Assembly: GCA_016748015.1 (NCBI GenBank)
Contig: JAAOMT010000139.1
Coordinates: 1-64,000 of the forward strand
Direction of reading: 5' to 3'
Origin: Geosiphon pyriformis uo1
Lineage: Eukaryota > Fungi > Glomeromycota
DNA length: 64,000 nucleotides
The notes under the pieces were generated by a model that was not told where the DNA came from, ran no database searches, and was given only the letters and a program-made list of their open reading frames with translations. The position numbers were made by a program, and so were the translations under genes. Positions 1 to 39,979 of the stretch are shown here, in pieces. The number at the start of each line of letters is the position of its first letter. Within the stretch, counting starts at the first letter, position 1.

Positions 1-1452
1 CAATTCGCGTATATATCCTACTGCTAATCAAATCATAGCTTCTGATTAAAGCTCCATAATTTTACCAGCAGTTTTAGGTTGAGCACAAAACAATCAATCT
101 AATAATCCCACAAGTAAACAAAGAGCAGCTAACAGTGCTAGCCACAACTTGGTATACAGCAACAGCAACAACACCACCACTACAACCACCACCAACATTC
201 GTATATCCGCGTACACAACGTTTTTCACACCTATCGGTATTGCACGCCCGATAGATAACGTTTCTCCTTTCACCAAAACGTCTTCTTCGAACGTCACTCG
301 CTTTAAAGCGGAGCAACGTTATCGAATTAAGACCTTTTTTTGTTTGCCAGAGGTATGAAGGCGGTTATCCTGCACGAACGAACGCTCGAGCCAGGAGGAA
401 GTTATTCAGAATGCTGGATACGTCTCCAGCATTCTCATTTTTCCAAAACTCACCCCCATACTATACGCGGGGGGCGCACGGGTGATCGCAGGTGCAAAGG
501 TGGTCGTCTTATCACATATGTAGCCTTAACTTACTGCTTGTTTTAATTAAACAAAAACAGTTTACATAGTAATTTGACGTTTTTTTAATTTTCAAATTTT
601 GATCTCGCCGTTTCTCTCCTATTTTCCTTTTTTGCCTTAAACTGCGACATGTTCAAGTTTGTTATTGTAAATACCAACTATTAGCTTAATACCCTATATT
701 TGCTACACAACGCAAACTGGCCACCACATATCGTAAAATGGTATCATCAACATATCACCATCGTGGTTTATATCACATTCACGTGATTGATGATAACTCC
801 TTAGTCTCTGACCAATTTGCTCAATTTCCTGCGTTTAACTTAAAATCAGTTTTTTTTTAATTTTGTTTTACTTATTACAATAATAGCAATGTATTTTAAT
901 CTAATTATAAGCAATAATATTTCTAATTAAAATAATTACAATAATAACATATTTGTTTAAATAAATAACTAGGTTTTTTGTTATTGATCTTTTAAATATA
1001 AAAAAAGCAAATAAATATTTTTTTATTTCTTTATATTTAGTTTTTTTTATAAGCTATTTCTTTAACACACTCTTTTTTATAAAGTTAATTATAGTAAACA
1101 TTTTTACTACTAGTTTAATTAAAAGAAAAAATAATATGGAAATTTGTTTAAATACAAAAAAAAATTTAACTTATATTTTTAGTAAAAAAAAACAAAAAAA
1201 CTCATAAGATTAAATATTAAAATATTAATTATAAATTTTTTTGTTAATTTTTTAAATATAAAAATGGCTAAATTTGATAAAAATTCTAAATTTATATTTT
1301 AAAGTAATAAAATATATAGTTATAATATTATTATTATTAATAAAAAATTAGATATTAAAAACATAAAAAAACTTTAAATAAAAAAGACTAATTTTATTAA
1401 TAATATAAATACAAATATTTTTTAATATAATTTTTTATAAAAATTTATACTT

Positions 1453-1756
1453 TATTTTTTTTTATAAATAATAACTAAACACAACTTAAAACAATATATC
1501 AAATTAAGTAATCTAAACTAAATGTAAATTATGTGCTTTTTATATATAATAATTATTCAAATTAGTTAAAACAATATTATAATCCTATATTAATACTTAA
1601 AAAAAAAAAAAACCTTTATATTTAAAGCAAATACCAAAAACATTTATTTAAACCAAGTATTTTTACAATATTATTAGAAAACAAAAATAATAAACTAATA
1701 ATAACAGAAAACAAAAAGCTATTATAAAAAATAAAACTATTTTTTTTTAATAAAAC
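1453..1756 (-). mobile_element. Short 5'-truncated, heavily decayed LINE 3' end
   Basis: Poly(T) at ~1453-1463. 1475-1575 aligns to the LINE tail at 37181-37283 (ctaaacacaacttaaaacaatatatcaaa vs ccaaacacaacctaaaaccatacatcaaa). Probable TSD tttatactt/tctatattt. Confidence 0.7.
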
Positions 1757-1764
1757 TCTATATT

Positions 1765-2447
1765 TAATATAATAAAAAAAATAATCAAGAAAAAATTTAA
1801 CTTCAAAAAGCAAATTAAATTGGTATAAATTTAATATATAAGATTAATTTTATAAATATTTTAATTATTATTCTTTTTAAAAAATAACAAGAGAATTTAA
1901 AAGTAAAAAAATAGTTTATATTATTAATAAAAACTAATATATTAATATAATTTTATGTTTTATATTAATACTTTTAGAATTTAATATCAGATATTAATTA
2001 TATTTTTTAATAATTTTTATTTAATAATTTTTAAAACTAATAATCATAAGTAAATACTAATAAATAATTTTTTATCACAAAAATATTCAAATATTTAAAA
2101 GAATTTAAAAAAAAATAAGCAAATTAGAAAAAATTGGATATTTAAAAGTGATTTTTATTATTTTAATTCATATATGATTTGTATATTTAAACATATTTTT
2201 CTAAAACTAAAAGATATATTACTTATATAGCTATTTAAAATAATCAATAATCAGATTAATAATTATATTATTAATTATATTATTAATTAAGTCAATAATT
2301 AGGTTAATAATTAGATTAATAATCTGGTCAATAATCAAGTTAATAATCAAATTAATAATTATTTTCTAAAAATAAAGTAGTTAATTACATGATATTAATA
2401 ACTAATACATATAATAATTAATAAAAACTATGGTTTTAATCATAATA
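1765..2447 (-). repeat. 3' LTR of element A (left edge truncated or obscured)
   Basis: Colinear with ~21575-22210. Contains 12-bp tandem units of the ggtcaataatca type. Confidence 0.8.
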
Positions 2448-2949: not shown

Positions 2950-5900
2950 TATTAATTATAATAGTCTGTTTTTCAATAATTAAAATAATATTTAAATAGT
3001 TTTAACCTAATATTTATGAAAAATATTAAAACTATTTTAAATGTTTTAATTCGTATTTTTCTATTATAATTACTTTAAAAAGTATTATTTTAATGTTAGT
3101 TTTTATTAGTAGTGTTGTTATTTTTCCATAAAACAAATAAAAAGACTTATAACTTGTTATATTATAATTTATAGTTCTGTAAATAAAAAAAGTTATGAAC
3201 AATATTTTGTTCTATAAATTTGTTTTTTTACTAGTTTTGGTTAAGATTTTATATAATATTTTATTGAAATATTTTACTAAGTTATTTGTTTAAAAGTAAT
3301 AAAAAAAAATTTTATAATATATTCTTATTTTTTTACAAAGTTCTTTAGTTAATATACTAAAAAAAGTTTTTTTTCTAATAAATAAGTTTTTTAAAACAGT
3401 TATAACAACAAATAATATCTTTATAAATAAAATTGACAATAAAAACTGTTATTTGATCTGGAATAATATTTGCTTTTATTTACTTTATAAGATAGTTAAT
3501 AGCTGTAATAATATATTTATTGTTATTAAAAGTTATTATTAAAAATTTAATAATATTTATATTAATTCTGTTAAATAGTTGGCCAACAGAAATTGAATAT
3601 ATTTTTTTTTTAATTAAGTTTTTTTTAACAAATATTTTTTTTTATATTAACATTTTATAAATAAGATCCAAATCCTATCTAGTATAATAGATTAAATTAA
3701 GTGATTTAAATTAGATACAAATTATGTATTTTCTATATGTGACTAGTCATTTAGGCCAATTAGAACAACACTATAAATCTATCTTAACAGAAATTACACA
3801 ATTAGTACTAAAAAAAAACTACAGAGTTTATAAAAATCAAAACTAATATTATGTATCTTTGTAATTCCAAGCAATTTAACAATATTAACAAAAAGCAAAG
3901 ACAAAAAACCACAGATATTAAAAATTACAGAATTATTATATGCAATCAAACTTTTTTTTTCCATAAATATCTTATATTTAGTTCTTACTAATTATATATT
4001 AATTTAATAAACTATCTTTAAGCTTTATACTAATTCAATAACTTTTTTGCTAATAGTTTTGCCACAGCCAAAAACAAAGACAGCTTCTAAATACTATTTT
4101 TTAAACTCAAAATTTTTATACAATACAGTATACATAGTATTATTAAATATATATACTAAAAGCAATTGTAAAATACAAAACAATAACAAATTTAAATCTA
4201 ATACAAAATTTTATTAGAAAAATATAAATCAATTAGGTTTTTGTAAACATTAGAGTCTATTATATATATAAAAAAATAATCAAAAAACTCAACTTCTTTA
4301 CAATATAAACACAATATACTGAAATATTTTTTATCATATAAGTATTTTTAAATAGCAACTGATAAACAATAATATAAAGTCTTTATAAAATATGAGTGTA
4401 AACTAGCCATATCTTTACTTATAAAACCAAATATTATATGCAAGTTAGAATGTCAAATTGATAGAATCCAAACCCAATTCATATCTTTAATTATGTCTTT
4501 ACAAATAATACTAAAACCAAATCCAACTTTTTAATAAATATAATGAACAGTTCTAAATATATTATAAATAAAATAATAAACATTCTTAAATACTATTATT
4601 CTACTAGTACTAATATATTTTTCTTTAACAAAAACAAAAAGTAATATATTTAAACATAAAACAAAATTAGCTAGCATGTTATATTTATTATCTATAATAT
4701 CTAAATGGTTTTTAATTTTAATTTATAAAATAATAAGCTTCTTATATTTAACAAAGTTTACAATACTATGTTTTTTAAGCCAATAGTAATTACAAAAGTT
4801 AGATAAAATTATATTCAATTCTATAATATATGCATTCAAAGTAGTCTGACTATCTAAATATATTTTAATACTACTGAAAACTAGAATATACTCTAAAACC
4901 AAGACAATTATCTGTAATTTTGCCATTGTAAAAGATACCAAACCACCAATTTTAACACTAATACTTAGATCTAAATCAACAAAAAATACAGTTGTACTAC
5001 ACTTTATTTCACATATACCCAAGTTCTTTAAAAATTTATTTGTGTAAATATTAATATTATTCAAACTAACACCAAAGAAATATTGTCTTACTATAGAAAA
5101 TTCATTAATACCAAAAATATTTAAAAGTTAGAAGACACTAATAGGTGGCTAAACAGCAGAATAAAGAATAAGATTAACTAAGTAATTATATGCTAACTTG
5201 AACCAAACAGAAACTAAGCCCTTATAATTAAGTCTTTTTTAATAATAAAAACTTTTTTAATCAAATATTGACTCTTTTTTATTATACAATTGTTTAATAA
5301 AAACAATACCAAATTTTTTAAATAAACAAAAATATTATAAAACATTAAATCTTTTAAAACAAAAAACATAGGAGTACCACCAGAAAAATAAAATACAGAA
5401 GAAAAATAATTAGTAAAGAAGACACTATAATCTAGAAAAAATTTTATCATATTAGCCAAAAAATTGTTAATCAAACTAATTTTCAATTTCATAAAGTATT
5501 ATAAAAAATAAATAGGAAATCAACTTAAAATCTGCAAATCTAAAAATTTATGATCAAAAAAATGACTGAAAACTCTATTAGTATTTAAAAAACTCAATAT
5601 AAAAGCCAATTTACTTTCTGCTTGCATTTACTTAAATAATTTTAAGCCATATAAAAATGAATAATAAAAAGTTTTATTGAAAAAATTCTTAGATAAACCA
5701 GTTTTTATCTTCAAATTTTTTCTAATCAATGTATTTTATTTGTTATATATACTTTTAGAGATAAAACTAAACTAAATTCTATAACTAACAATAAATTGAA
5801 GCACAGTCAAAATTAAATAAAAGAACTGCTTGTCCAAAATAGTTTTTTTCAAGACCATATTGGTAAAAAACCTGATATTTAAATAAGTTTTTTTTAAATT

Positions 5901-8800
5901 AGGTTTGAATAAATCTTTACAAAACAGAAAAATACTAAGATATCTATGAAACTCTCTATTCTATACTATAAATATTAGCAGATCACTAATCAATAATAAA
6001 GCATTCCTAATCTTTCAGTTAATAGGAATAGTTACTGTTTTTTCATTATTAATTAAAATATTATTGATATTAAAAAACTCACTTGTAATATTTAAAATAT
6101 ATTAAGTAATAATTTAATCACATTTTATCTAAATTATGTCATCACAAAAGCACTAGCTATCAGAAATAAAATTAATCTGTTCTGGTTTTCTATTCAGTCA
6201 GTTTTGGCTACAAACTTAGTATTAATATAATAATCATACAAACTTTTATGTTTTTTAATTTTATATAGGAAAGAATTATAGAAAATTCTCTAAAGCAGAG
6301 AAAAGAAAACCTTATTCTGATCCAGACTATTATGTACTTAGTACTTATTAGCCAACTCATAATTAGTCATAATCTAGTTAATCCTATTATTGTAAATATC
6401 TTTAAAAAACCTAATGAATCATTTACACATTTTAATCTAAACTAAACTATTTTTCAAATGATGTTAATCAACAGAATCATAGATTTTTTACATATTTTAT
6501 AAGACCAGCCAAAGTTTATAACTCTTTTTCAAAACATTTTCAATTACTGAATTAACTACAAAAATAGAAAACTAAATAATAATGCTCTTCAATACAGAAA
6601 AATTGTCATCATAAAAAACATTGAATCTACTATAAGCCAAGAAAATTCTATTAAAAAAAATCTTAGAAAAAATTTTACAAGCTGTTTTAATTAATATAAT
6701 TGGTTTAGTATTAATTAAATATATTTTTCCACTCATAAGATTTAAAAATTATTAACACCTAAGTTTTTTTTAAAAGTTAAGATACAAACTTATGTACCAA
6801 ATAAAAGTTCAAAAAATCTAAAAACATAACAAAAATATAACTATCACAATATTTTTATAGCTCATTTATAATATTAAACAAATTAACAGTCTTTTTATTA
6901 GACAAGTCTTTAATTATATATATTATATTATTATAATTAATAACATTTATAACATTGAAAAAAACAGTATTATCAATATAAGCCAATAGCAGATATTAAT
7001 AATACCATAGATTGAAAACACTATCCAATACCAATCTTTTTCTTGTTCAATCTTCTATAATTATATTAATTCTAGATTTAGTCTCAACAGAATTCAGAAC
7101 CAATTCATTATTAATAACCCAATAATTCAATATGATTTTCTAAAAAAAACACTTCAATATACTTTTGAGCAAATATTACAAGTTTTAATGTATTTAACAA
7201 TATTTTTTTTAAGATAAGTTAATAATAACAAACTAAAATTTTCTAAATTGTTTTTGTTTTTCCAAAGTGTCTAATTAATAGATTAATATGTATATTATAA
7301 ATTACAATTTTTCTTTTTTTAAATCTTATAATTTTTTAAAAACAATTAGAATTTTTTTTATTTCTTTTGTATAATTGTTTTTAATGAATCTAATAAAAAT
7401 TTGATTATTTATATAAATGTTTTTTTTGTTGTTAAGTATAATTTAATGAGTATTATTCTTTATCCAAAAATTTTATTAAGGTAGAATAGTTGTCCAAGTT
7501 TATTATTATGTTTAATTAAAACAATTATACTAATAATTAAGTTAATTTAGAAATAGTTGTGTTATCAATTAATAATAAATTTGAAAAAAACATTAATATT
7601 TTGATAATTAGCTCTTTTATAATATTGTATATTATAGTCAAATTTATCTAATTAGAATATCTAGTAAGTTAATCATTTATATTCTAATTTTTTTTTATTA
7701 TATAGCTAAATTAATGTTTAATAATTTGTTATTACTAAGAATTTGATATCAAAAAAATATTATTTTAGTAATTAATAGTCAAAACTACTATTAAATATTT
7801 TTATTTAATAATTGAGTAATTTTTTTTTGCTGAAAAAAGTATTTTATTGATATATGCTATTATATGTTTCTTATTATTATCATTTTTTTAAAAGAAATAA
7901 TACCAAGTATAAAGCCAGATATGTCAGTATAAAAAATAAAAGATTAGTTTAGATTAAATTATTTGAAAATGAGTTCAATAGTAAGTTTTTTTTTTAGAAT
8001 TTTAAAAGTTTTTTGTTAATATATATTCTAATAATAATTAATATTTTTTCTAAATAGTTAATTTAAATATGCAATAATTTTGGAAAAATTTTTGATAAAT
8101 TTCTGATAATAAGAGATTAAACCAAAAAAAAAGTATATTTCAGATATATTTATTGATTGTTTAAGATTTTGGACTTTTTTGTCTTGACAAAATCAAAAAA
8201 ATTTCTTTTTTTTATAATAAAATAACCAAAAAACTAAGTATATTATTATCTAAAAAATAATTTTATTGGATTAATTTTTAGGCCAATATTTCTTAAAAGA
8301 TTAAAAACTTTTTACAAATATTTAAAATATTTATTTTAAGTTTTTGAATATATTATTATGTTGTTTAAATAAATTAAAACAAAATCTTTATTAATTAATT
8401 CAAATATTTTATCTATTAATTAATTCAAATATTTTATCTATTAATTATTGAAAAATAAGAGAAGTATTTATTAATCCAAAAAATATAATTATAAATTTAT
8501 ATGTACTATACTTTGTAATAAAAACAGTTTTTTTATAATTCTTTAAATCTATTTTTACTTATCAAAATTTAATTATTAAAAAAAAGCAGCATTATAAAAC
8601 TTATCTAGTATTATATTAATTTTGAGAAGTAAATATATGTTTTTTTTAATAATATTTAATTAACAATAATCAATATAAAAGTGTAAAGTTTTTTTTTTTT
8701 GAAAACTATTATTATTAAAAAAATTTATTTACTTTTGGTTTTTTATATAAATCCAAGTTTTTTTATTTGTTTAATCTTTTTTTTAATAAACTTATTATTG
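2950..8800 (-). pseudogene. pol of element A: RT (~8100-8800), RNase H (~7570-7960), integrase (~7178-7560 plus 2950-3626)
   Basis: Minus strand gives KTVFITKYSTYKF..FGLINTS, YLNN (=YLDD, 8360-8371), FYTDISG, KYIKTCNIC (zinc finger), KYIITAINYLIK, TNNLVKYFNK (=TNGLVERFNK). Many stops. Confidence 0.85.
3637..7167 (-). mobile_element. 5'-truncated LINE (RT-RNaseH-CCHC part of ORF2), intermediate decay
   Basis: Poly(T) ~3635-3643. Tail gtgactagtcatttaggccaattagaacaaca then stop. ORF 4723-5064 (VFFVDLDL..MAKLQIIVLVLEY..YLDSQTTL) matches RNase H of the 30-37 kb LINE. TSD aacaaatatt 3627-3636 / agcaaatatt 7168-7177. Confidence 0.9.
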
Positions 8801-10920
8801 TGATAATTGAATTAATATGATTTTAAATAAATAAAATAAATTTTTTTGGTGGTAATAATATATTAATTTATATTAATTTGTCTAAAAATATTTTTTTTTT
8901 TAAGGATTACTGGACTGTTTTAATTAGTAAATTTTCAAGATTTTTTTTTTTGAAAAAAATTTTTTTGTTTTATTATTAATGATTATATCTTTGAGAATTT
9001 ATTTTTAAATAATTTTTGTACTTTTTTTATCTTTTTTAAAAGTATTAAGCAATGAATTTTTAATCTTTGTAATAGATTTGACAAAACATATATTTATTAC
9101 AAAAAAAATATAATAATTTATTATACTAGTATTATGTACAAAAACCATATTATTAATAGTTATATTTGGCTTTCTTGTCAGGTTTTTTGCTAAAAATTCT
9201 TTAAAGAATGTTATAATAAGATTAATAAATTATCTTATTATTAACTATAAATTTTTTTTGTTAATTTTAATATTGTTTAAGAATTTGCTATTGCTTAAAA
9301 AAATAATATAGATAAGTTTAATAGTCTTTTTTTATTTTTATTTTTATTATTTTTATTATTTTTTAATTTTTTTAATTTTTTTCTTGTTTTGGTTTTAATT
9401 TTGAAAAAATTATTCAATAATAATACTTAATTATAATAAGTTTTTTATCATATTTGATAGTTAATTTACAGAGTTTATAATCAAATAAAGCTTTAACTTT
9501 CTTAAATTATTTATTATTTACAATAATAATATATTTCTTAACCTTTAAAACTTTTATGTTAATTTTAATACAAATTCTATTAATTTGAACAAAAACAATT
9601 TTGGATATAACAAAATTTTTTTTTTATTATTATGTATATTAATTATTAGTCTGTTTGAAAGTTCATTAATTTTTTTTAATAACTTCTAAAAAGTATTTAG
9701 TAATAATACTAACAAAGAATTTACTGTTTAAAATCAGATTAATAAAATAATTAATCATTTGTATTTTATAAATTAATAAGATAAAATTGCTATTATTAAC
9801 AATTTCTGCTTAGTAAGAGTATTTATTAGTCTTTAAGGTCTTTTTTTTAAAATCAGGAATTTGTAAAAATCTTTTTTAAACTATAAGTAAGTTATTAATT
9901 AGCCAAAAATAATGTATATTAAAGTTTTATAAGATCTTTTATAATAAAATAAAATTTAGATTTTTGTATAATTTTTAAGAGTTTTAACTTAAAAAAATTT
10001 ATAAAAATTTTGCTTTTGAGAATTTATTGTTATTAGCCATAAATATTGATGTTTTGTTAAAATTTGAGATAAATTCAACTTTGGCTTTTTTTTTCTTGTA
10101 AAGATAGAAAAATTAATAACTAATTAATTTATATTATAATCATTATTAATTAAGTTAAAAGAATAAAAAAAGTTTTTTTCTGGTTGACTTGTACTTTTAC
10201 TCTTTGAAAGTGCATTTATTAATTTAAAAACTAATAAGCAGTGGCTTAAATTAAGAAATTTTTTTTAAAAAAATTCAGATTAATAAGATTTAGTCTTTAA
10301 TTTAAAATATTGTTATTATTAAATCTGTTATTTTAATTGTTATTGTTTCTAAGAATTAAAGAAAGCAAAAGAAAATTGTTGTAATCTTTTAAAAAGTGTT
10401 TGGTTAATTTATAGTAATAATACACAAGTGGATTATAATTTTATTGTCTTTAATTATAAGATGACTATTAAAATTGATTATAATAAAGTTTAAATTTAGG
10501 TTTTTAGAACTATTAATTTTTTTTACTGTTTAAGCTAAAAATTCCAACAATTAGACAAAATTAATAGTAAGTTTATCTATTAATTGTTTATTGAAGTTTT
10601 GTGTTTGGACAAAAAAAAATAGCAGTTATTTAAAAAGCAAAAACCAGAATAAAAGCAAAGGCAAAAACTAGAAATGTGTTTTTTAAATACATTTTTTGAT
10701 TGTCTTTTATTCTTTAAGTGGGTTTAATAGTCATATTTATTATAAAATTATCTTTTAAAGCCAAAAAAAACCAGAAAGTATAAGATAGATTAGTTCTCAA
10801 ATTTTTTGTTTTTTAGTTTAGTTTTTTTTAGTATTTATTTATTTAATTAGCTTTTATAGCTTTAATGTATTTAATTACAACTTTACCAAAGTTTTGTGTT
10901 TTTTTTATAGTTTTATATGC

Positions 10921-11890
10921 TGTTATTTAAGTAGAAAAATTAATTCAAAACTATTAAAAAAACTTGACTAATATATAATAATATAAAATAATACAAGATA
11001 ATATACAATAAAATAAAATAACACAAAATAACTAGTTATAATATAGGATAGCTATTTATAACATAAAAAAATAAAGCAATAATAGAAATAATAAGTAATA
11101 GCTAATAATAACAAGCTATTAAAAATAATTTTATAAAATTAAAAATATATATAAACACAAATAGTTTTAGTAAATAAAAAAACAAACAGAAAAACAAAAA
11201 TTACTTTTCTTTTAAATATTGTAAAAACATAGTCTAAAATTAACTTTATATATATTTTTGTAAATCAATCTAATAAAATATTTTTATTTTAAATTATTAG
11301 TATATAATTCCAATATTCTGATTATTAAAAATAAAATCAATTGTTTTTGTTATCTTTGTTTTAAGCCAGATGCTATTAATATAAAATAGTTTTGAAACTT
11401 TAATAACTTGGACTAATTGTTTTTAATTATAATAATTAACAGTATTAATTTCTCTTTTCTTTTTTTTTTATTCTTTTTATATTTTTTATTTTTTATTTTT
11501 TTTATTTTATTTTTTTATATAAAGTAACAATATTGAAAATTTATTGTCTAAAAATAGATTTTGTAATAGCCTAGTAAAAAAAGAAAGTTTTTTTTAAGTT
11601 TAAATATTAACTTTATTTTATTAGCTTACCAAAAAAGTAAAAAAACAATATTAAATTCTAATAATTGTATTTATTAGCTTAGAGAAAAATACAACAAAAA
11701 CAGCATAATTACAAAAACTAAAACTCTATAATAAAAAACTTAATAAGTATAACTTTAGATAAAAAAAACCTTCAAAAATTGATAACTAACTTAATTAAAA
11801 AAACTATTATATTAATACTTAATTAGTTTTTATTATTAAATTATAAACACCAAAAGATATGATTCTATTCTACCAAATTTATCTATAATA
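10921..11890 (+). repeat. 5' LTR of element B
   Basis: Direct repeat of 19647-20641. Confidence 0.92.
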
Positions 11891-26393: not shown

Positions 26394-28700
26394 ATTTTTA
26401 TTAATTAAAAAATCAAAAGCTTTTTGTCTCCTTAATTTTATGATTATGACCAGAGCAAAGAGTAAAAAAGCTGCACCTAATATTTGTCCTGAAATATTTA
26501 ATAAAATTTCAATCAGAGGAGCTCTCTCTGTTGTAGAAGCAACTAGACAAAATGTTTTAAAAGCTTTCCCTTTATCTAGTAATTGTAATAAGCTGTCTTT
26601 GATAGCCACTGAAGCAATTTCCTTATCTTTGGCTGGTTTTTCACCAGTCAAAGTTCTCTCAAAGAGACACACTTGAGTTAATCTTAGTGTTGCCTCCACC
26701 CTGACTAAGAGCCCAAAAGTTTTTAATAATAAACCAGTAAATAAGCTGGTTTTCCCCTCCATAGATTCAACACTTGGTGCTACTAGCATCACTTCTTCAA
26801 AAAAATGATCAAAAAGACCAAAAGTTTAGAAAAGTGGGAGCAGTCACTTGTCTCTGCTATTGTTACACCGAACCTCTTTGTGGTTTCCAATGAGATCTTA
26901 GATGAGATCTCCATAGCATCATCCAGCACATCATCTAAGATAGGCCAAGATTAACCACTGGTTGTGTTGCCAAATGTAGTGTCTTCTGACAAATTATTGC
27001 CAGTTTTAGAAACAAATCAATCTCCTCCTGTTGAGTTACTTGTTCTTGGGAACTGGGCTGATTAAATGGAAACTGAATCATTTTCTTCTCTAGTTTTTGG
27101 TGCTCTTTCTGGTGGTGCTTGGAAAACTATTACTAGTTATCAAAGGTTTGCTGGGTGGGTGGCCTCTATTCTGGTGTCTGGTGCTATTTTTAAAATCAAA
27201 TTGGCTCATGTTAAGGCTGTTTTTCAGTTTGTACATGGTTTTTTAGGTGCTAAATCTGTTTCAAAAGACAATATGAAGCTTTTCTGTATGGAGTTTGCTT
27301 CTCAACAGTCTTTGGAAGCTGCATTTCTGATTGAGCTTACAAGCTCTGTTCATTTGGTTACTCTCAAAATTGCCAAGTCTTTGGTGGTTTCTGAATCTGT
27401 TTCCCTTTCTGCTGCTGTTGCACTGCGAGATGTGCCCTTGAGTGTGTCTGCTGCTGATATTAAGACAGCTTTTAGTGTGTTTGGTAGTGTTGCTTATGTT
27501 ATGCTGAAGCCTGCTGGCATTTGGCTGTACGTGGTGGTTTATTTTGAAAAGTTGGATTCTGCTGTGTCTGTTTTGAATTATTGGTCAGTTTTGGTAAGCA
27601 AGAATAGTATTAGAATCTTTCCTCTGATGAATCAAAATAAGACTATTTTGTCTTGTGATATGTTTAAGGCCAAGTTGGTCAATTTCTCTTCTGGCTGTAC
27701 TGCCTTTGAGATTAGTGATATGATCTCCCAGGTTGGTGGCCAGACATGTTTTATTCCTCATTCACCTGATTCTGGTCATTGTTCCCAGTTTGCTCTGGTT
27801 ACATTTGGTTCCTGAATTGATTTGGACTCTGCAATCATTAAAACTGATACCTTAAGAAAATGCTGTATTTGGTGGAAAACTCCTGGTTGTCAGCAATGCT
27901 TTAGGTGTCAAAAAGTGGGCCATTTGACTGTTGACTGCAAAGTTTCTCTGTTTCCTCCTCCTAAGGCTCCCAAGATGTTCAAACCACATTTTGTTGGTTC
28001 TTTGTCTTATGCTAAAGCATCTGCTTCCTCTGTTATGTCTGAATTTCCTTCTTTGGTGGCTTCTACTCCTTCTGTAACTGTTGTTGATCCTGCTATTGGG
28101 TCCAGATTGAACTCTTTGGAAAAGCAAATTTCGAATTTGGCTGCCTTGGTAAAGTTTATTGTTGAGTCTGTTGGCTCTTTGGTTGTCTTGATATCTCGTT
28201 TCCTTGATGATAATGCCGTTAAGACTGTGCAGTTAAAAAAAAATCTCTTTTCTATGAAATATGCTTTTAACAATTTTGCCAATTTTCTGGTTGGTGTGTC
28301 TAAGAATATTGCTTGTCTTAGATTTGAAGTTGACTTTGGTGGCATGGATTATGATAATATACAGGCCACCAAATCTTTTTTTTTGAGTGAAAACACTGTT
28401 GAGCATGTTGTTACTTTGTGGCAGATGTCGGATGCTAAGGTTAGAAGTAGTATTGAATCTACTAGATTGTTTCTTAGTGAGTTTTATTTTTGATTCTAGG
28501 CATCTGAATGGTGTTATTGAAAAATTCATAAGTTGGGGTTATTTTCACCTCTTATTGTTTTAGCATAGTGTGTTCTTGACTGGTCTGAATGGCTGGTCAC
28601 ATATAGAAAACGCATGATTAGCACTTAATTTAGATTGATTTTTTAATGTATTGTTTTAGGTAGCTTTTGGGTCTCGCTCGTTAAATAAAAAGAAAAAAAA
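26394..28700 (+). mobile_element. ORF1-only non-autonomous non-LTR retroelement (HAL1-like)
   Basis: TSD aaatatttat 26384-26393 / 28699-28708 and a poly(A) tail. One disrupted ORF is followed directly by the LINE 3' tail. No EN or RT. Confidence 0.85.
26446..28568 (+). pseudogene. LINE ORF1-like RNA-binding protein (RRM-like, CX2CX4HX4C knuckle, coiled coil), disrupted
   Basis: MTRAKSKK...; WSVLVSKNSIRI and VGGQTCFIP are homologous to WSVLIGKNAVRV and VGGKTCVIE of the LINE ORF1. Knuckle CFRCQKVGHLTVDC. Several stops and frameshifts. Confidence 0.85.
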
Positions 28701-30380
28701 ATATTTATTTACTTAAAAAAATTAAAAAATTCAATATTATTTTTTACAATCTTAACAATTATTTTATTATATTAGATAATTATTTAGAAATTAAAATTAT
28801 TTATAGTAATATCTTTTAACAAAAATTACTATAAAAAGTTTTAAATTTTATGAAAATAATTAAATATTTTTTTCCAAAATTCAATATAGCTTTTATTAAT
28901 AAAACTTATCATGTTATTTTTAAGAAATTATTTTAAATTAACATGAAACAATTAAAAACACAACAGCAAAACCAAATTTATTACTTATTATTTTATCAAA
29001 TTATTTGAATTATTATGTAATTAATAATCCAATTTATACAGAATACAAATGTAATCAAATTATAATAATTAAATTATATAATATGTTAAACTATATAATA
29101 TTCAAAATTCACTGAAATATTTAGTAATTTAATAAAATATTTAACAGTTTAATAGAATAATCTATAGTTTATAGAAACAATCTGTAGTTTAATAAAATAT
29201 ATCTTTAATTTTTCAAAATATTAAAAAAAATGTTAAATTATAAAATAATATTACAATAGATTATATAAAAAAAATATATCTTAGTTATAATTATTTTACT
29301 TTAATTTAAGATATTTTTTCTATAAATTAATTCAAATAAAAATTTATTTTGAAAAAAAAATATAAATTCTTTAATAATTATTATTTTAAAAGTGATTAAT
29401 TATTAATTTTAATAATAGTTAGTAATTTCTAAGTTTGAATCTAAAATAATTTTCTTAATATTTTATTTTATTTTATTTTTTTTAGTTTATTTTTTTATAT
29501 TTTTTATATTTTATTATTAAGTAATCTATAATAATAAAGCTTATAGTTGAAATTTTTTGTAAAAAAGGTGACTTTTATTACAAAGTAACTATATAAATAA
29601 TTGACATAAAATTGGTTATTTTATAAGTCTAATAGTATACATAGTTTAAAAATATAAAAAAATATTTTAAAAAAAAATTAGATTATTAAAGATTTATTAA
29701 CTTCTATTAACAAAAAAATTAATAGCAAAATAATATTAACAATATTTAAAAAAAAGTAAAAAAATCTTTAGTAATAATATTTATTTAATTTATATTATAG
29801 AACTTAATTAAACAAAAAATTTATTTGTATTTTATGTAAATTTAATAATTTTTTTATGTATATTTATCTATTAATAATAATATTTACAATTAATTTGATA
29901 ATATTTAAAAATACTAAAATTATACAAAAGCTTTAATAAATAAATTAAAATTCAATAATTTGTTAATTATATAAAATTTGTGTTAATATAATCATAGTTA
30001 AATATTTTTAACATGAACTTTTTACAAATAAATTAAAAAAATTAGCTAATAATAAATATTTTTTTTATTTAAATTGTATAAATTTTTTATTTAAATATTA
30101 ATTTTATTTTTTAATTATTAAAAATTTTAAATATAAATAAATTAAAAACAATTATTATATATAAAATTATTGGCAAAAATCAGATTCTGTTAAATTATTT
30201 CTATTAAATTTTTTAAAAGATGTTAAAAATCAAAAAAATAAAAACTTTTTTCTTTCCTTTATCCAAAATTCCCAAAAAAGAGTCTAAAGTTTTTTCGAAA
30301 AAAGTTTTTTTACCATTCAGTACGATAAATCAAAACCATTTTTCGATTACGAGGCCACTGTTGGCTCTGTTATTGCTGTT

Positions 30381-32181
30381 ATGAAGAAGGCTACCAAAGT
30401 TTCTGGTTCTGAGGGTGGTTTTAAGACAGTTGTATCGAGGAAAAAGAGAAAGGGTGGTGTATTGGCAGAGAGTATTGATAATAGTGAAGTTGCTGATAAA
30501 GCTCTTGGTAATCATTCATGGGATTCTGAGGCAGGTGACACTACTGAATCTGAGAGTATTGACATGAAGGAGGAGTGCTTGGTTGAGGAAACCAGTGTTT
30601 GACTATGGTGAGAATAGTGCTTTCGCAGGAGGGGATCCTGATCAAATGCTTAAGAGTTTGCATATAAAGACCAAAAAGGTGTTAGGGAAGCCTCTGGGTG
30701 TGATTGATTATGATACTGTCGATGTAGATGATGACGTGTTAGATGGTTCCTTCCTTCTCCCACCCCCTTTGCCTATCAAACTGTCTGTTCAAGTGCCTGT
30801 TCGCAAGTCCTTTGCTTTGGATATTGATCTCGTGGCTGTTACTAGGAAATCATCTTAGGAGAAATTAAACTTTGTCAGAAAAATTTTTTCAGATGTAAAT
30901 GGTTTTGGGAGGGCCTCTGCTCCCTCAAAATTTGGTGGAATCATCCAGGCATCTTTCACTTCCGAAAAGGTGATAATGGCAGCTGCTCAATTGACAAATG
31001 ATTATGATGTTGTGGTAAACACTGATCTTAAACGCCCCATCAACAATCGTATGAATTGGACAATTGTATTGAAAGAAATTCCTATGGGAACTTCCATCGA
31101 GGCAGTGCATGCAGCCATTTCTGAATTTGGGCTTATTAAGTCGATCAAAATGCAGTTGGTGGGTCTATGGCAAAAGGCGATCATCGAATTGAAAAATCAA
31201 ATTCAGGCTGATCTCTTGGCAGTTAAGTGGTCTGTTCTTATTGGGAAAAATGCAGTGCGTGTAGCCCGGGCTGATGTTGACAAACAAACGTGGGACACCA
31301 GAGATGAGTTCAGGGCTTTGTTTTATACTCTCCCTATGAGCACCACCACTTATGATCTTTGGAACTTCATTGGTTTGGTTGGTGGAAAAACATGTGTTAT
31401 TGAATGCAGCTCTGTCAGTTATGTCCGAACACACTGTGCCACTGTATGCTTCGATTCTGAGGGTAGTCTTATTCAGGCAATGGCAAACACTTCTGTTATA
31501 AAAGGCATTGGTCTCCATTGGTCTTGTTTGACTGCTGCACTGTGCTCAATTTGCAGAAATTCCAGTTATACTTCTCTCACTTGTCATACTGCTGGTGTAT
31601 TCTCAAGTCCTAGGAGCAAGAGAGCTTCTCTTTCAGCTCAAAATCAGCTTCATCTGGCTAAGATATATGAAAAAAAATCTGCACCCGTTTCTCACCCTTT
31701 GGCTTTCAATGGAAAAATCTGGGCCTCCATGGTTGGTAAACCACTTCCGTTAGCATTATTTAGTGGTTCAGCTCAATCTGGTTCTGTATCTTATGATAAA
31801 CCTCTCCCGACTGTTAGTGGTAAATTGGAAGATCATTTGAAAAATATTGAGAGCAGTCTTGTCAGCCTCGTGAGACAAATTGGTGAGTTGGCTAAGAGGT
31901 TGGACTCATTCGTGCCAGCAGTTTCCCAGCCTAGCCCTGGATGTCAGCTGCTGGTGACCTCCCTATCACAGAATTAAGGGGAGGATATAGTAATGGGAGT
32001 GGGTTTGGATGATGTCACTAGTGACAAGACTGCTGCTGTTACAAGTTCAACTGCCTCACCTGAGGTTGTGAAATTGAAAAACATGTTGGAAAGTCTCTTT
32101 ACTTTGGTCATAAGCCTATCGGTGCACTTGGATAGTTTGGCTTTGACAGGTGGTGCTCTTCCTCTACCTCTTTTTCAATGA
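30381..32181 (+). pseudogene. LINE ORF1
   Basis: Basic N-terminus SRKKRKGG, RRM-like core, degenerate knuckle CSICRNSSYTSLTC, coiled coil. Frameshift ~30600; stops at 30856 and 31975. Confidence 0.9.
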
Positions 32182-35100
32182 GTGGTCTGGTGTGGAAAAT
32201 TGCTACGTGTAATGTTCGTGAATTGAACAATCCTGCGAAGCAAGATGATGTCATTTGTTGGCATAGGAATATGGGCAATTTAGTTTCTATTTTCACTGAG
32301 TCAAAGCTTAAAGGAAAAGTTTGTCCGTGGTTGGCCAACAAATTTGATGGTGTTCGGATTTTTACTTCTGGTCTGGATTTTGGTTCTTCAGGTGCTGAGG
32401 TGTTAATTGTCATGAATTTTTCTTTGGCAAGACACATTTTCAAGATTTTTAAGATGCCCGGCCAGCTCCTCTCCATCAGACTTCTCTTCAAAAATAAACT
32501 TTTGGTTTCTGTTTTGGGTCTCTACACTGGTGCCTCTTCAAGTGTTCAATTTTCATAGACTGACGACATCAATTTTTTGATTGCTAAGGCGGTAAATGAA
32601 TCTTCTTTTGTGGTCTTGGGTGGCGACTTCAATGAGGATGGCATTTGTAAGAGTGCCAGTTTCAAAAAGTGCTTTGATCTGGGTCTGGTTAATGCCTTGG
32701 GTGGAAGTGTGCTTGCAAAGATGCCGACATGAGGTAACTCTCGTGGTGTTGTCAAGACCATTGACTATATGTTTATCTCTTCGAGCTTGGTCAATACTGT
32801 AGTGGATTGTGGTGTGACTGGGGTCGAAGACTTTTTTGATACTGATTATAAGGCTGTTTCTGTTTCTGTGAGTTTGGGTGGCTTGCTTGACTCTTAGCTG
32901 AATTCGATACACAAGCAGACTAATAAAGATCATTGGAAGTTTGATTTCGGGAATGCTGATGAGAAAAGGTGGAACAATTTTAAGGATGCTACATTGGCCA
33001 ATGGCCTAATGTTCTCAAGTGATTTCGCTGCTTCTGCAGAATCTTCAAATTTGGATGCTATATAAGACATTGTATGCAAAGTAGTGATTCTCTCAGCAGT
33101 TGAAACATTCAAAAAGAAATGGTTTAAGAGTTATGATGAGGTTTTTACCAAGAGTTCTTCTAGGTTTCACAAGCTTGAGTTGCTGGTATCCAAGCTGGTT
33201 AAGGTGTCTCGTTTGTTGTCTAGTGTGAAATTTGCATTGTTGTTGAATACATGAGAGAAGCTCAATGTCAATGGTGCTTCAGTGGTGAAGTCTTTATTTT
33301 TTTCAAGCTCCAGTTTTGACAGGATTCGCTCAGCTCTGGCTAAGGCAAGGAAGTCTTACCGCTTTGCTAAGTTGCTGGAATCCAAACGTGCTGAGGAATT
33401 CCATATTAGGGTGGCTATTGATAAAAGAATGAAAAGTTTCAAATCAGACAAGGGTTACACTATCAAGAGTGTTTTGGAGCGTCCCTTTCACAAAGTGGTA
33501 CTGGATCATTTGGTTGTGGGTGACAAGTTGATTTTGGAGCCCAGCTCAGTTAAAGCTAGGGGTGGATGGGATCATGGAAGGCTGGACCAGGAAGCACAAG
33601 GTGGTGCCAGATATCTCCGATATTTGGTCTTGCCAGTACAAGCCTTTGGAGTATGTTTTTGATGATGCATTTTCTGGTGTAATGTGTCCTGTTGGTTTCA
33701 ATAAGTTGTTCAGTGTGGTTTCTGGTCTGTCTGAAGGCAAGGCTGCTAGTCTTTTTGGGATTTCGAATGAGCTCTGGAAACACTATAACAGATCAATTTT
33801 GGACATGCTTTTGGTGCTTTTAAATTCTTGTTTAATTCGTGAGTCAATACCTAGTGCTTAGAAGGAAGCCTGGATCTCAATGATCCCTAAGCTGTATAAG
33901 TGGAAAGGGGTTCTTATGAACATCCGACCTATTGCCTTAATTGAAACTGCCCACAAGATTCTTTCCAAGATTCTTTTAAATAGGATCTCGTTGGCTTATA
34001 GTACTTTTGATGTTCTGCGTGAGGACAATTTTTTGGTTTTAAAGAGTATGACAACACAGTTTCCCATTTTTGCCATTGGTTCGGTTATTGAGGATGCTTT
34101 GGAAAAGAATCGTGAGTTCTGGTTGGTCTTGTAAGACATGCAGAAGGCTTATGATTCTGTTGAATAGGAACACCTTCAGGACAGTTTGGTTAGGATAAAG
34201 ATGTGTAGCAGGTTCATTAGGTTCTTTGGCAGCATCCACAGTGGTCGCATTAACAGAGTTATGATGGATTTTGGTTTGATAGATGGGTACATGGTGCATA
34301 ATAGCTTGGACCAGAGGGAGGTGTTCTCACCACTCCTCTGGCACATATTTTATGATCCCCTTTTGTGTGAAGTTAAGAGATAAGTGAATGGGTGTGGCTA
34401 TAGATTGAATTCTCATTTTATTTCTGGATGTGGTCGTGCTGAGTCTCGGACTGGTGTATCTTTATTTTTTGCAGCGGGTGCCTTTGTTAATGATACTATA
34501 TGGGTTGGCAGCAGTCAAAGTGCCACACAACACATTCTTAATGTTGCTAGTGAATTTTTCAATATTAATGACATCTCGATTAATAATAATAAAACTGTTG
34601 CCATTTCCATCAATTGTGATGGTATGGCTTTCTCTTTGCTGATCAGCGGGTCACCTATTTCTATCACCAAGAAGAGGAAATCACATCACTATTTGGGGAT
34701 CTATTTGTCAACTGAGGGTCTTTCGAAGCCTAGTTTGGCTAAGGTGCATTCTGATGTCTGGTTTTTTTCTAATTTAGTCCTGAAAAAGGCAGTATCTGAT
34801 AAGCAACTTTCATATTTGGTTTCAGCAGTTCTCTTTTCTATCATTGGATATAGAACACAATTCAGTTACATTCCTATTAGTTCTTGTAGAAAGTGGGACA
34901 CTTTGATTTGTAAGGGCTTGAGATCTAAGTCTGGTTTGCCATGTGATTTCTCCAATGATACAATTCATTATCCTTTTCTGTATGGTTTGAAGACTTTTGA
35001 GCAAGTTCAAGTTGAGAGCAAGTTGGCTTTAGTCGTTTCTTTTGCGAACTCTGTTAGAATTTTGGGATGTCTATTTTCTCACTGGTCACATGATCTGCAG

Positions 35101-36867
35101 GTCTTTTGCTGGTGCCCACTACATCCGTTGCAGTGTCCAGTTTGTGTCAAAGTCAATTCTCTAAACAATTTTCTGGTGGGTGTGATGCATATTTTCTCTG
35201 GGTGTGATTTGTTGTTGGGTGGCTCTCTGACTAGTGCTTTTCGTCATCGGAGTGGAACTCCTATGTCTCTTGTTCTTGGTGAATCAAATTATGTCAAGAG
35301 TGTCTCTTCACTTCAGCATTATGGGATTGCTTTTGTAGACCAGCTATGGAACCGAAATGGGACTGTTTTCGAGTGGAAGACCTTCAAATGGTGGAAGCGG
35401 TTAGATCCATATGGTCTGGTTCCTGTCTGGTTTGAGCTGTCAGTTCGTTTTCTTGGTGGCGTGTCTTCTCTTCCTGTCTGCTCCATGTTTTTGGCTGATT
35501 GTGGCTCTTCGGATGTTCTTCGGTCTCATGAGTTTGGCGTCATTGGCGCCAGTTTATTCAATTCTAATGTTGGTCATTTTTCTGTTTACACAGATGGATC
35601 TCTAAGTAATTTAGGGACTGTTGATATAAAAGCTGGGGCTGCTGTTTTCTTTAAGGACATTGGTATGGGTTTGGGTGTAGGGGTATCTGGTTTGATGTTT
35701 TCTATCTTGATGGAACTGCAGACTATTACTCTAGTGCTTGAGTGCGTCCCTTCTTCTCGCTTGGTCGACTTGTTCTCGGATAGTCAGGCTGCTTTGAATG
35801 CTTGCAGATTGGAAATGGAATTGGTTCGCCCAGATTTTAGAAATTGGTGTTGGATTGAATGCTGCCATATTGTTAATGTCATTCATCATAAGAATTTAAA
35901 AGTTAATTGGTGTAAAGTAAAAGGACACTCAGGGGTTTTAGGCAATGAACAAGCTAATAAGTTGGCCAGGACTGCAGCTCTTTCTGGTTGGCATCTGCCC
36001 TATTCTGTCGATGAACGCTATCTTAGGGGTGGGGGAGCAGCCATTTCTAGTAATTCTAGACATTTTGTTTGGGATATTTTTTGGTCAGTTCATCGTGCAC
36101 ATTAGGAGATCAGTTGTGATATGGGAGTGGTGGCAGATAATCTACATACAGATATTGATTGGTTTAGATCATCGCTGGTTTGGCATCCAGATTCTCACAT
36201 GGCTGCTGGCTTCACTAGCAAGTGGACTGTTGGTTTCCGAATTTACTTTATAAAGGCATTACATCATCAGCTCTCTGTTGTCATGCATAAGTGGCTTTAT
36301 GATAAGCAATACCTCAGTGTGATGTGTTTGTTTTGTGGTGATGTCGAGGTCTCAGACCATGTGTTTTCTTGTTCATTTGATGCCAATGGTCGTGCTCAGT
36401 TGTTGAATGCTCATGCAGCAGTTTGGGGTGTGTGCTCTGGTTTGGCTCATTCTTCCTCAGGTGTCTCGCAGCTGATGTCTACTTGTGTATCTGACATTTC
36501 AGTTAGTACTGCTCTATGCAAAGGTTTTGTTTTTAAGGATTGGTTTCATGAGTCTGTTTTTGTCTTTAAGGATTCCAGGATAGCAGGTCAGAATATTGTG
36601 GTCTTTGTGCATGAGTTTAGCTTGGCTTTTTGGGAAGACATTTGGTTGGTTCGTGCCAAGCACCATGCTTTTATGGAAAAGAATGGGTTTATTTTGTGTG
36701 ATGGGTCAGTTCCTGTCTCGATTTCTGGGCTTTCTTTAGGGCTGTCATCTGGTGTGACTCGGCTGCTGGGTGTTGCTGAGGTGATTGGTGTTGGTTTTGG
36801 ATTCTGTAAGTCTTGTTTGTTTTTTTCAGGCATAGAGGATAAGATTTCTGTTCATATAGGTACTTAG
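32178..36867 (+). pseudogene. LINE ORF2 (endonuclease, reverse transcriptase, RNase H, zinc finger)
   Basis: ATCNVRELN, GGDFN, TIDYMF (APE); RPIALIE, DMQKAYDSV, FSPLLW, AFVND (=FVDD) (RT); VYTDGS, FSDSQAAL, KVKGHSG..GNE (RNase H); CLFC..DHVFSC. Many transition-derived stops. Confidence 0.95.
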
Positions 36868-37150
36868 TGTTGTCCTGATTGGTCTGAATGACTGGTCACA
36901 TGTAGATAATGCATGATTTACACCTAGTTTAAATCATTTGTATGATGTATTGCACTAGGCAGTGTTTGGACTTTGCTTGTTAAATGTTAATAAAAAAAAA
37001 AATCAAATCAAATAAATATTAATAATAAAGAAAACTAAATTTTCAAAAAAACCAAAAAATTTGCTAAATTTAAACTAAAACCTAAAAAATTGTAGATTTT
37101 ACTATAAATAAAAACTGCAATAATAATAAATTGCTAAATTTAAGTTCTTT

Positions 37151-38760
37151 TTTTTTTTTTAATATGTTTATTGAGTGAAGTCCAAACACAACCTAAAACC
37201 ATACATCAAATAATTGATCTAAATTAGGCATGAATCATGCACTTTTTACATGTGACTAGCCACTCAGGCCAATCAGAACAACACTATGCACCTATATAAA
37301 CAAAAACCACATCTAAAGTGCCTGAAATGAACAAACTAAATTTGCGCAAACCAAATCTAATGCCCAATGCATCATTAATACCCAACAATCTGACAACTCC
37401 AGCCAAATACAGAGAAGACAGACCAGAAATAGAAACTGGCACAGAACCGTCTCGAGGAATTAACCCATGCTTCTCCATAAAGGCACAATGTTTGACACAG
37501 ACCAACCAAACCTCATCTCTAAAAGCTAAGCAAAAATTACGGACAAAGTCCATAATTTTCGTACCAGCAAGTTTCAGGTCACCAAAAACAGAAACCACCT
37601 CAAAAAACCAATCATTAAAAACAAAGCCTTTGCATAGAGCAACACAGACCGAGATGTTAAGAATACACGAAAAAAGAGTTCGCAGCACACAAGAAGAAGG
37701 GCCATGAAGGCCAGAAATGTCTTTCCATTTAACCACAAAATCACCAAGCAGCTGATCACAATTAGCAAAGTCAGAATCACAAGAAAAAACATGGTCCAAA
37801 ACCTCCACACTTTCACAAAACAAGCAAACCACACTAGAGTAACTCCTATCATAAAGGTGTTTGCGAATGGTCACAGGCAGTCTATAATACAGAGCTTTCA
37901 TAAAATACATGCGCAAGCCAGTAGTTTGAATACTGGTGAAGCCAACAGCCATGTGTGAATCGGGATGCCAGACAGAAGAGGACCTGCGCCAATTGATATC
38001 TGTGAGCAATTCACCAGCAACAACCCTATTATCCGAACTGAAACTCCAACGCGAATGATGAATGGACCGATAAATATCACACACAAAATGCCTAGAATTA
38101 CCTGAAACCAGACTACTACCAGCCAGGATAAACTGCTCGTTCAGCCAGGGGGGAAGAACAAAATCAGAAAAAGCTGTACGGCCAGCCAGATCATTAGCCC
38201 GGTCATTACCTACAACACCAGAATGTCTTTTAATCTTACACCAGCTGACATCCAATCTCTTAGCATGAACAAGACTAGCAATATGATGGTGCTCCATCCA
38301 ACAACTATTCCAAAAATTCGGATGCACAAAACCCAATTCCGACCTGCAAGCGTTCAACGCGGCCTGACTATCTGAAAATAAGCTAACTTTGCTAACTGCA
38401 GGAATACACTCAAGAACAAGTGCAATAGCTTGCAATTCCACCAAAGTAGATGACAACAAACCCAAGACTTTAACACCTAAACCCATATTAATATCATCAA
38501 AGAAAACCACCACACCTGATTTAACACTGAAAGTGCCCAAACCAGTCAAGGATCCATTGGTATAGACCGAAAGGCTATCAGCACCCAATCCCAATAAATG
38601 ATTATGAACCAAATCAAAATCAGTAGATTCCAAGACACTAGGAGTAAAAAAAATGCCTACCGAACAGCTATGAACAGAAGAAAATGACCCTGTACCACCA
38701 AGATAACCAACAGAAACACCAAACCAATCAGGAATGGGGCCACGCAGATCCAGCCTTTTC
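37151..38760 (-). mobile_element. 5'-truncated LINE (RNaseH-CCHC end of ORF2)
   Basis: Exact TSD taagttcttt 37141-37150 / 38761-38770 and poly(T). ORF 37284-38633 is homologous to the C-terminal third of the neighbouring ORF2. Confidence 0.95.
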
Positions 38761-39979
38761 TAAGTTCTTTAAAAGCAAATTTTGGCTAATTTTTAATTAT
38801 ATAAGTCAAAATATTAATAAAAAAAACTGAAAAATTTATGAATATAAAAAAAAAAGATTAATAAAATATTTATTTAAAAATTAAAAATATTATTTATTTA
38901 ATAGTAGATTTTAATACTAAGTAAAATTTAAAATAAATAATATAAAAATAAAAATAAAAATAATTATAGTATTATTAACATGCAAAATAAACATAATAAT
39001 ATAATTTTATTTGGTGTTTAGATAATATAAAAATGAATTTTTTTTTTAATTAATAGATACTTAAATAATTTGTTTTAGTGTTTGAATAATATAAAAACAA
39101 ATAATATAAAAACAGAAACCATAATTTTTTTCTAGCTAATATACTTGGTTTTAATAATATATTAGATATATAAAAGTATTAATTTTATAATATAATATTT
39201 ATGTTTATTAAATTTTTGAATTTAAACATGAATAATTTAGTTTAATTTTATGTTTGGTTTATATAACAATATTAAAATCAAATATTTGTTTTTAATAAAT
39301 CTTTGAATAAAATTAACAAAGAATTAGTTAAAGTTAAAATTGAAATTGATATTAAAATTGAATATATAGATAGTCTTAATAGTAATTTATATGATTTAAA
39401 TAAAGATAGTTACATTTAATTGTTGGCTGGTATTAAATCAAGTGCAGATAAAACTGCCAAATAAATAAGTGGTATTATCATTAAAAGCAGTATGTTGGTT
39501 GCAATAATGCATAAAATGTCTTCTTAAAGTAGGTTTTTTTCTATAGAATCAATGTAGTTTAGTCTAGACTGGGGTTGTGTAAACTACATTTAATTTAAGT
39601 CACTTAGTTTAACCCATTGTATTAGATAGTGGTTGGACTACACGTTAAATAAAAAAATTTTAATTTATTAACAATAATATTTTTACAAACTTTTTAAAAT
39701 CATTAAAGTAATATTATTTGTTAAAAACTACAATTTTTATTTTATTTCATAGAAAAAAGTAAAATATAATATAACAAAAGCTATTTTCTAAAAAAAAGTG
39801 ATTCAAAAAAGTACTAAAATGTTGAAAGGCAAACACTACTTCGAAATTGAAAAGTGATTATTTTAACTTTTAAAAGAAGTTTTAAGAGTAAAATGTTAGT
39901 CACGCTTTATTTGGCGATAGGCAATCATATTCAAACCATTTAATAAGTAAAATTTAAAAATCAATTTGGTTTGAGGAAA

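Follow-up and report, generated by a model that had tools for sequence, protein, structure and literature searches.

Transposon-confined C:G to T:A hypermutation in the glomeromycete fungus Geosiphon pyriformis

Compositional states of the locus

Transposons in the genome of the glomeromycete fungus Geosiphon pyriformis have undergone a strongly directional loss of cytosine, the outcome of which resembles repeat-induced point mutation (RIP). The process is described here from a stretch of 64 kb (the window), the first part of contig C328, and in particular from element B, a Ty3/gypsy-like retrotransposon with long terminal repeats (LTRs) that lies within it. The evidence comes from this one window together with about 60 short loci of the same genome, which was searched as a 128-Mb assembly of 792 contigs.

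Three compositional states are present in the window. An AT-rich domain of nested dead retroelements (900-26350, no strand assigned) has 14.7% G+C overall, ranging from 10 to 21% along its length, and holds 5 CpG dinucleotides in 25 kb. GC-normal transposon blocks at 26.4-28.5 kb and 30.6-38.6 kb stand at 36-44% G+C, yet their CpG observed/expected ratio (o/e) is just 0.07-0.47. The third state is a host gene block (39800-62500, no strand assigned), comprising CCS1, Anp1, ETF and other genes, which has 30-42% G+C and a CpG o/e of about 0.7-1.3 and serves as the control. When computed in 200-bp intervals, G+C across the window has a bimodal distribution that peaks at 12-16% and at 36-40%, few intervals falling at 20-28%.

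Hypermutation of element B and its LTR pair

Element B is read on the forward strand, with a 5′ LTR at 10920-11896 (14.0% G+C, 0 CpG), an interior at 11897-19645 that contains many stops, and a 3′ LTR at 19646-20646 (13.5% G+C, 1 CpG). The two LTRs, of about 975 bp, differ across 947 aligned sites by 122 transitions and 23 transversions (14 of the latter A<->T), giving a transition/transversion ratio (Ti/Tv) of 5.3, whereas unbiased mutation in sequence with 86% A+T is expected to yield about 0.5; an ordinary ratio would have counted against the hypermutation proposed in the first-pass annotation. That annotation had drawn on a shorter stretch of the same pair (11341-11449 versus 20112-20220), and its counts are reproduced: the ungapped 109-bp alignment contains exactly 13 differences, all of them transitions (C/T or G/A), with derived states on both copies and none of the 13 sites within a CpG in either copy.

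Because the two LTRs of a single element differ, the changes arose after integration, as had been proposed. Both C>T and G>A occur in both LTRs, and the two strands are hit equally, in agreement with the double-stranded action claimed earlier. These observations bear directly on the idea that the RNA or cDNA of retroelements was edited before integration, an explanation that would suit the fact that the identified hypermutated elements (the gypsy-like elements A and B and a LINE relic; LINE, long interspersed nuclear element) are all retroelements. The 122 transition sites that separate the LTRs of one insertion, with changes of both types in each, contradict editing of cDNA before integration, and independent genomic copies of a family carry different private changes, so that we regard pre-integration editing as barely credible.

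Catalytic motifs are altered in the same direction. The reverse transcriptase (RT) core of element B reads VYLNN at about position 16852 (+) in a clear Ty3/gypsy RT context, where VYLDD is found in gypsy elements, and that of element A, a second gypsy-like element with its RT core at 8200-8500 on the minus strand, reads IYLNN at about 8371; the change from YLDD to YLNN reported for both elements is thus present. A parallel change of the protease motif from DSG to NSK or NNN, also reported, was not found by the motif scan. Among RVT_1 matches genome-wide, in-frame stops within otherwise good matches are mostly TGA or TAG rather than TAA, as is expected if they arose from TGG, CGA or CAG codons by G>A or C>T.

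Direction and magnitude of the bias

The polarity of the changes was taken from per-column counts and from real copies, rather than a reconstructed sequence, as references. A first look at the genome gave more than 1,000 candidates for the LTR family of element B, of which 44 copies were aligned. All but two of these have 12-19% G+C; the remaining two, L022 (G000:C490:471811-472804) and L053 (G000:C596:394878-395865), have 25-27%. Of the alignment columns, 163 are fixed for A or T and none for C or G. There are 116 sites at which the LTRs of element B differ by a transition, and 108 of them have a C/G state in at least two of 42 other copies, so that C>T or G>A accounts for at least 93% of these changes. 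Singletons at A/T sites, comprising 30 transitions and 73 transversions, have no such bias, so the excess of transitions is specific to cytosine. The gain of C/G is no more than about 0.015 per A/T site in each copy, the loss is about 1.1 per C/G site in log terms, and the resulting ratio of C>T to T>C is at least about 75:1 in the LTR family, compared with about 2.4:1 implied by the host non-coding G+C of about 29%.

The same direction is found when GC-normal and AT-rich homologs are compared. The pair L016/L062 has 165 differences in the expected direction versus 18 in the opposite one. In the window, a hypermutated LINE relic (3812-6694, minus strand) retains 30-43% amino acid identity to the GC-normal LINE at 30.6-36.9 kb, and over 391 aligned bases (6304-6694 versus 33937-34327) C/G is replaced by T/A at 75 sites, with the opposite at 16. 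An origin of these families as AT-rich sequences from the start is ruled out by the asymmetry of both comparisons.

The extent of the loss had been described as near-exhaustive, which holds in part: CpG is essentially erased, but most LTR copies keep 27-42% of their original C/G and the two GC-richer ones about 60%.

Sequence context of the mutated cytosines

The signature of the process is a preference for a 5′ pyrimidine, which is neither the CpA preference of Neurospora RIP nor the CpG/TCG preference of basidiomycetes. In the LTR family, the mutated fraction is 0.73-0.80 after T and 0.57-0.70 after C, and about 0.5 after either A or G (5′ pyrimidine versus purine, p = 1.5e-9). The 3′ base had no significant effect in the same family (p = 0.11), the fractions being 0.50-0.62 for CpA and 0.59-0.66 for CpT. 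Repeat family F, polarized as two copies versus one, gives the same 5′ order (T 0.51, C 0.45, A 0.26, G 0.17).

The fastest class consists of CpG and TCG, and TCG is the most mutated trinucleotide (0.95, n=5). CpG has almost disappeared already from elements that have lost few other cytosines, and of about 250 C/G sites in the least eroded, GC-richest LTRs, 8-10 are in a CpG context when both strands are counted. Such depletion of CpG in transposons is a hint of methylation. Deamination confined to CpG is ruled out, since most mutated cytosines lie outside this dinucleotide: in family F, 2-3 of about 100 transitions fall at CpG, and in the 109-bp stretch of element B none of the 13 does, in line with the mostly non-CpG pattern noted before.

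Confinement to transposons and the host control

The transition between the compositional states is abrupt. Over a distance of 100-200 bp, G+C of about 40% gives way to about 10% at the edges near 850 and at 26.4, 28.6, 30.2 and 38.8 kb of the window, and the edges of LTRs at other loci are equally sharp (100-200 bp). The nearby host genes keep a normal G+C and CpG content, as had been stated, and the CpG o/e of 0.07-0.47 in the GC-normal transposons contrasts with 0.7-1.0 in host open reading frames (ORFs). Drift toward A+T in unique DNA, which the first-pass annotation had named as a finding that would speak against it, is not seen: ORF-free stretches of the host block have 24-37% G+C with CpG present, and G+C at third codon positions (GC3) is 24-42%. 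A genome-wide AT drift is ruled out by the G+C and CpG of host non-coding DNA within the window.

These values also limit what ordinary neutral decay can account for. Under this explanation, old insertions would drift toward A+T under the bias of the genome or of the region, as where GC-biased gene conversion is missing or late-replication repair is poor. The loss of cytosine does grow with age, and Glomeromycotina genomes are AT-rich overall; nevertheless, host ORF-free DNA with normal CpG lies at a distance of a few hundred bases, the excess of C>T over T>C in the elements is greater than that of host non-coding DNA as given above, and copies of family F are separated by about 100 transitions versus 4-7 transversions, with element edges of 100-200 bp. 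Neutral decay is already largely refuted by these findings and is, in our estimate, highly improbable.

The classical RIP indices follow the same boundaries. For 900-26350, TpA/ApT is 1.09 and (CpA+TpG)/(ApC+GpT) is 0.93, with a composite index of +0.16; for the LTR of element B the values are 1.20, 0.72 and +0.48, and in host DNA, the LINE and family F the composite index ranges from -0.46 to -0.83.

Several observations concern the host block itself. An AT-rich island within it (48337-49284; 950 bp, 11% G+C, no CpG) gives weak matches of 65-74% at dozens of places in the genome and is probably an old repeat relic rather than unique DNA. The ORF at 41481-42050 (minus strand) is 100% identical to the Geosiphon pyriformis protein G9A89_000732, its next matches being from other Glomeromycotina (65-72%), and the placement of the window in this lineage by the first-pass annotation was right. 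This ORF corresponds to the Sod_Cu-like exon of the copper chaperone CCS1 and not to a superoxide dismutase, full-length homologs having HMA and Sod_Cu domains. Genes are densely packed in the CCS1 neighborhoods of Gigaspora rosea, Rhizophagus irregularis, Paraglomus occultum and Acaulospora morrowiae, where the only AT-rich troughs are small.

Other repeats of the window and the time course of erosion

The remaining repeats of the window form a graded series in which loss of cytosine can be compared with divergence by transversion. Repeat pair D (left copy 1755-2470, right copy 21563-22235, both +) flanks elements A and B and is older than them because it encloses both; its copies differ by 75 transitions and 25 transversions. 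Repeat pair E, compared as a direct repeat (left copy 22236-22790, right copy 29286-29810, both +), has 57 transitions and 27 transversions. Repeat family F (26365-28500, no strand assigned) is GC-normal, with 37-40% G+C and a CpG o/e of 0.07-0.18. Its copies elsewhere differ from the window copy by about 100 transitions and 4-19 transversions per ~750 bp, and pairs drawn from the window segment 26365-27161 and two copies elsewhere supply the counts of about 100 and 4-7 given above; family F is an early stage of the same erosion.

The LINE at 30600-36870 (+; ORFs within 30970-36867) has a broken ORF2 ending in RNase H, with 41% G+C and a CpG o/e of 0.26-0.40. A homolog of its ORF1, the ORF at 27066-27815, gives a weak match to RRM_1. 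For the ORF at 34384-36105 there are 2,113 first-look candidates in the genome, including at least 40 full-length relatives with 78-92% identity over 1.7 kb, and the window copy, at 41% G+C, keeps an open frame of 573 codons and is depleted only of CpG. The inverted 3′ part of a second LINE copy (37284-38633, minus strand) is also GC-normal (CpG o/e 0.47), with 53% amino acid identity.

Most transversions in the pairs B, D and E are A<->T, so they provide a clock that is independent of cytosine chemistry. Measured against this clock, the loss of cytosine rises in step with divergence: the inferred loss per copy is 0.17 for family F at a transversion divergence of about 0.5%, 0.47 for pair B at 2.4%, 0.59 for pair D at 3.8% and 0.67 for pair E at 6.5%, and in each of the four C>T per C site exceeds transversions per site roughly 35- to 60-fold. 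The two marks of decay of 5-methylcytosine (5mC) are both seen, namely depletion of CpG specific to transposons and a loss of cytosine that increases with A<->T divergence in these four families or pairs. Along each copy, C>T and G>A are intermixed at random, no one-strand runs being detected by runs tests in five copies (p 0.17-0.92), which argues against an origin in a single single-strand event or a small number of them. A strand-run signal would also be wiped out by many superimposed rounds.

A RIP-type defense is one rival explanation. It would recognize duplicates by homology, possibly before meiosis, and mutate them in bursts by means of a RID/DIM-2-like DNMT paralog until they are too diverged to be recognized. 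The mutation of both LTRs of one element after integration is compatible with such a defense, as are RIP indices that are positive solely in the AT-rich domain, the sharp edges of elements and the bimodal G+C. So is the narrow plateau occupied by 42 of the 44 LTR copies (27-42% of C/G kept, at 72-82% pairwise identity), which is what a self-limiting process would give, and the uncoupling of cytosine loss from transversion load in L022 and L053. DNMT1-superfamily genes lacking the RFD domain are present as well and are candidates for such a paralog. Against a RIP-type defense, the context effect is on the 5′ side with no 3′ CpA preference, one-strand runs of a single mutation type are missing, and cytosine loss scales with the transversion clock in four families or pairs. 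The LINE family of at least 40 copies also weighs against it, as its window copy is not hypermutated; of the repeat-targeted action claimed by the first-pass annotation, the confinement to transposon sequence with sharp edges stands, and a homology trigger is no more than a hypothesis. We consider a RIP-type defense unlikely. A progressive or many-round process, with a rate that varies between loci, is favored by the data as a whole.

Candidate enzymes

A canonical DNMT1, with RFD, two BAH domains and a methyltransferase domain, is encoded on contig C371. Two further genes with a DNMT1-like catalytic domain lack RFD, one on C702 with a weak BAH match (27.6 bits) and one on C666 without BAH; their G+C and CpG are host-like. 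Two ORF pieces of these two loci (L002 and L006) gave no match in PDB. The genome also has two DNMT2-like genes, and one of them (L009, G000:C692:420914-424135) adjoins ORFs with Sel1 repeats, a family known to be expanded in arbuscular mycorrhizal fungi.

Contig C657 carries two short, paralogous Dcm-like genes 32 kb apart, L001/L003 (G000:C657:788280-789372) and L005 (C657:820713-821336), the latter with in-frame stops. Their similarity to bacterial Dcm-type enzymes equals that to DNMT1, no ORF with an N-terminal domain occurs in the 1.5 kb upstream of them, and a bacterial origin of these cytosine-5 methyltransferase genes is possible.

A different type of enzyme is suggested by the sequence context, namely an AID/APOBEC-like deaminase of cytosine in DNA, or else an unrecognized analog, that would be aimed at transposon DNA and prefer cytosines after T or C. 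Deaminases that act on single-stranded DNA typically respond to the 5′ neighbor, and here the 5′ neighbor is the only one that matters. The genome contained no matches to APOBEC_N (PF08210), NAD1 (PF18778) or OTT_1508_deam (PF14441), a weak negative in that the controls for NAD1 and OTT_1508 were silent and that for APOBEC_N fell below the cut-off, and it has five CDA-fold (PF00383) loci, a housekeeping number. Strand-coordinated clusters are lacking, both strands are equally affected in the LTRs, and the preference is only about 2-4 fold. Taken together, a deaminase of this kind is decidedly unlikely.

Interpretation

The best reading of the data, to which we give roughly even credence, is silencing-coupled deamination of cytosine in methylated or heterochromatic transposons. 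What the sequences show is that transposons, once integrated, accumulate C>T mutations on both strands, each cytosine mutating at about 35-60 times the per-site transversion rate. Every context is attacked, at about twice the speed where the 5′ base is T or C, with CpG the first to go, and the process ends at the edge of the element, sparing host genes and host non-coding DNA. A graded series starts with the LINE, which is GC-normal but CpG-depleted, continues with family F, where about 17% of the cytosines are lost, and ends with relics that have lost 50-70% and stand at 12-16% G+C. As to mechanism, the transposons may be marked by cytosine methylation or heterochromatin, laid down by DNMT1 and the DNMT1-like enzymes without RFD, and the modified cytosines would be lost continuously or over many rounds. 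The trigger would presumably be the silenced state itself, rather than pairwise homology acting in one premeiotic burst.

Several points weigh against silencing-coupled deamination. L022 and L053 keep about 60% of their C/G at the transversion load of copies that keep about 32%, so that age is not the whole explanation; local escape from silencing may account for them. The bimodal G+C of the window would also be expected from a switch or a burst, and the proportionality to time is drawn from only four families or pairs. We know of no DNMT target preference that accounts for the 5′ preference, and an effect of the 5′ neighbor is more typical of deaminases of single-stranded DNA. Published data for Rhizophagus are limited to CG methylation (PMC8647823), which makes the methylation of all cytosines an assumption of the model.

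More tentatively, Geosiphon, and perhaps other early-branching Glomeromycotina, could possess a dedicated mutagenic defense that is independent of RID-based RIP, in which an enzyme recruited to silenced transposons deaminates cytosine in any context with a preference for TpC and CpC and requires neither homology pairing nor sex. We hold this to be rather unlikely. The first-pass annotation had further suggested a link to cryptic sex, which is not supported by anything seen in the sequence.

Hypermutation of C to T in all contexts, confined to the transposons of a glomeromycete, would constitute a third layer of transposon control, beside CG methylation and RNA interference, in large, repeat-rich genomes that are supposedly long asexual, and would account for their AT-rich "deserts". 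Kimura-type repeat landscapes and the dating of LTR insertions would be distorted, because transitions would run about 50 times faster than the assumed clock. Geosiphon would also offer a system in which to ask whether mutagenic genome defense predates Dikarya or arose repeatedly.

Comparison with known systems

Editing of retroelements by AID/APOBEC3 enzymes shares with the present case a rule that depends on the 5′ neighbor (TpC, CpC). In Geosiphon, however, the changes follow integration, affect both strands equally and form no clusters, and no recognizable enzyme was matched in the genome.

Deamination of methylated transposons, at CpG in vertebrates and at CG, CHG and CHH in plants, resembles the present case in the gradual, silencing-linked loss of cytosine, in the early disappearance of CpG and in the sparing of genes. 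The differences lie in the far greater extent reached here (12-16% G+C), in the involvement of all contexts and in the 5′ pyrimidine bias; moreover, non-CG methylation is not known from Glomeromycotina. In Rhizophagus, transposons are CG-methylated and a DNMT1-related enzyme is expressed (PMC8647823).

RIP-like hypermutation with a TpCpG or CpG bias is reported from some basidiomycetes (PMC12210899, PMC4014442). It is likewise a C>T process restricted to transposons, and a favored 5′ T, TCG as the most mutated trinucleotide and the presence of DNMT1 are further likenesses. Unlike that pattern, most mutated cytosines in Geosiphon lie outside CpG, as seen in family F (2-3 of about 100).

Reviews treat RIP as an ascomycete trait with weak echoes in basidiomycetes (PMC12210899, PMC13297926), and no sign of RIP was detected in either Gigaspora margarita or Mucoromycotina, according to Dallaire et al. 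2021 (PMC8647823). Transposons of arbuscular mycorrhizal fungi, Geosiphon among them, were surveyed in 2025; the study describes striking LTR expansions in Geosiphonaceae and does not mention RIP or AT-rich erosion (PMC11952901). No report of a RIP-like process in Glomeromycotina was found in the literature searched, a search outside which the Geosiphon genome paper lies.

The closest parallel in outcome is the RIP of Neurospora crassa and other Pezizomycotina, which depends on RID and DIM-2. Both processes convert C:G to T:A on both strands, act after integration, are confined to repeats with sharp edges and leave AT-rich blocks free of CpG, with positive RIP indices in Geosiphon. The present case departs from RIP in showing no preference for CpA in the base counts, where the 5′ base is what matters, no one-strand runs and an accumulation that appears proportional to time, and in the high-copy LINE family whose window copy escaped hypermutation. 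It also departs from RIP in its glomeromycete host, in DNMT paralogs that are candidates only for the role of RID, and in that no link to a sexual stage is visible in the sequence. The hypermutation of Geosiphon transposons is real, strong and apparently undescribed for this lineage, and it is RIP-like in outcome while differing from RIP in its signature and probably in its kinetics.

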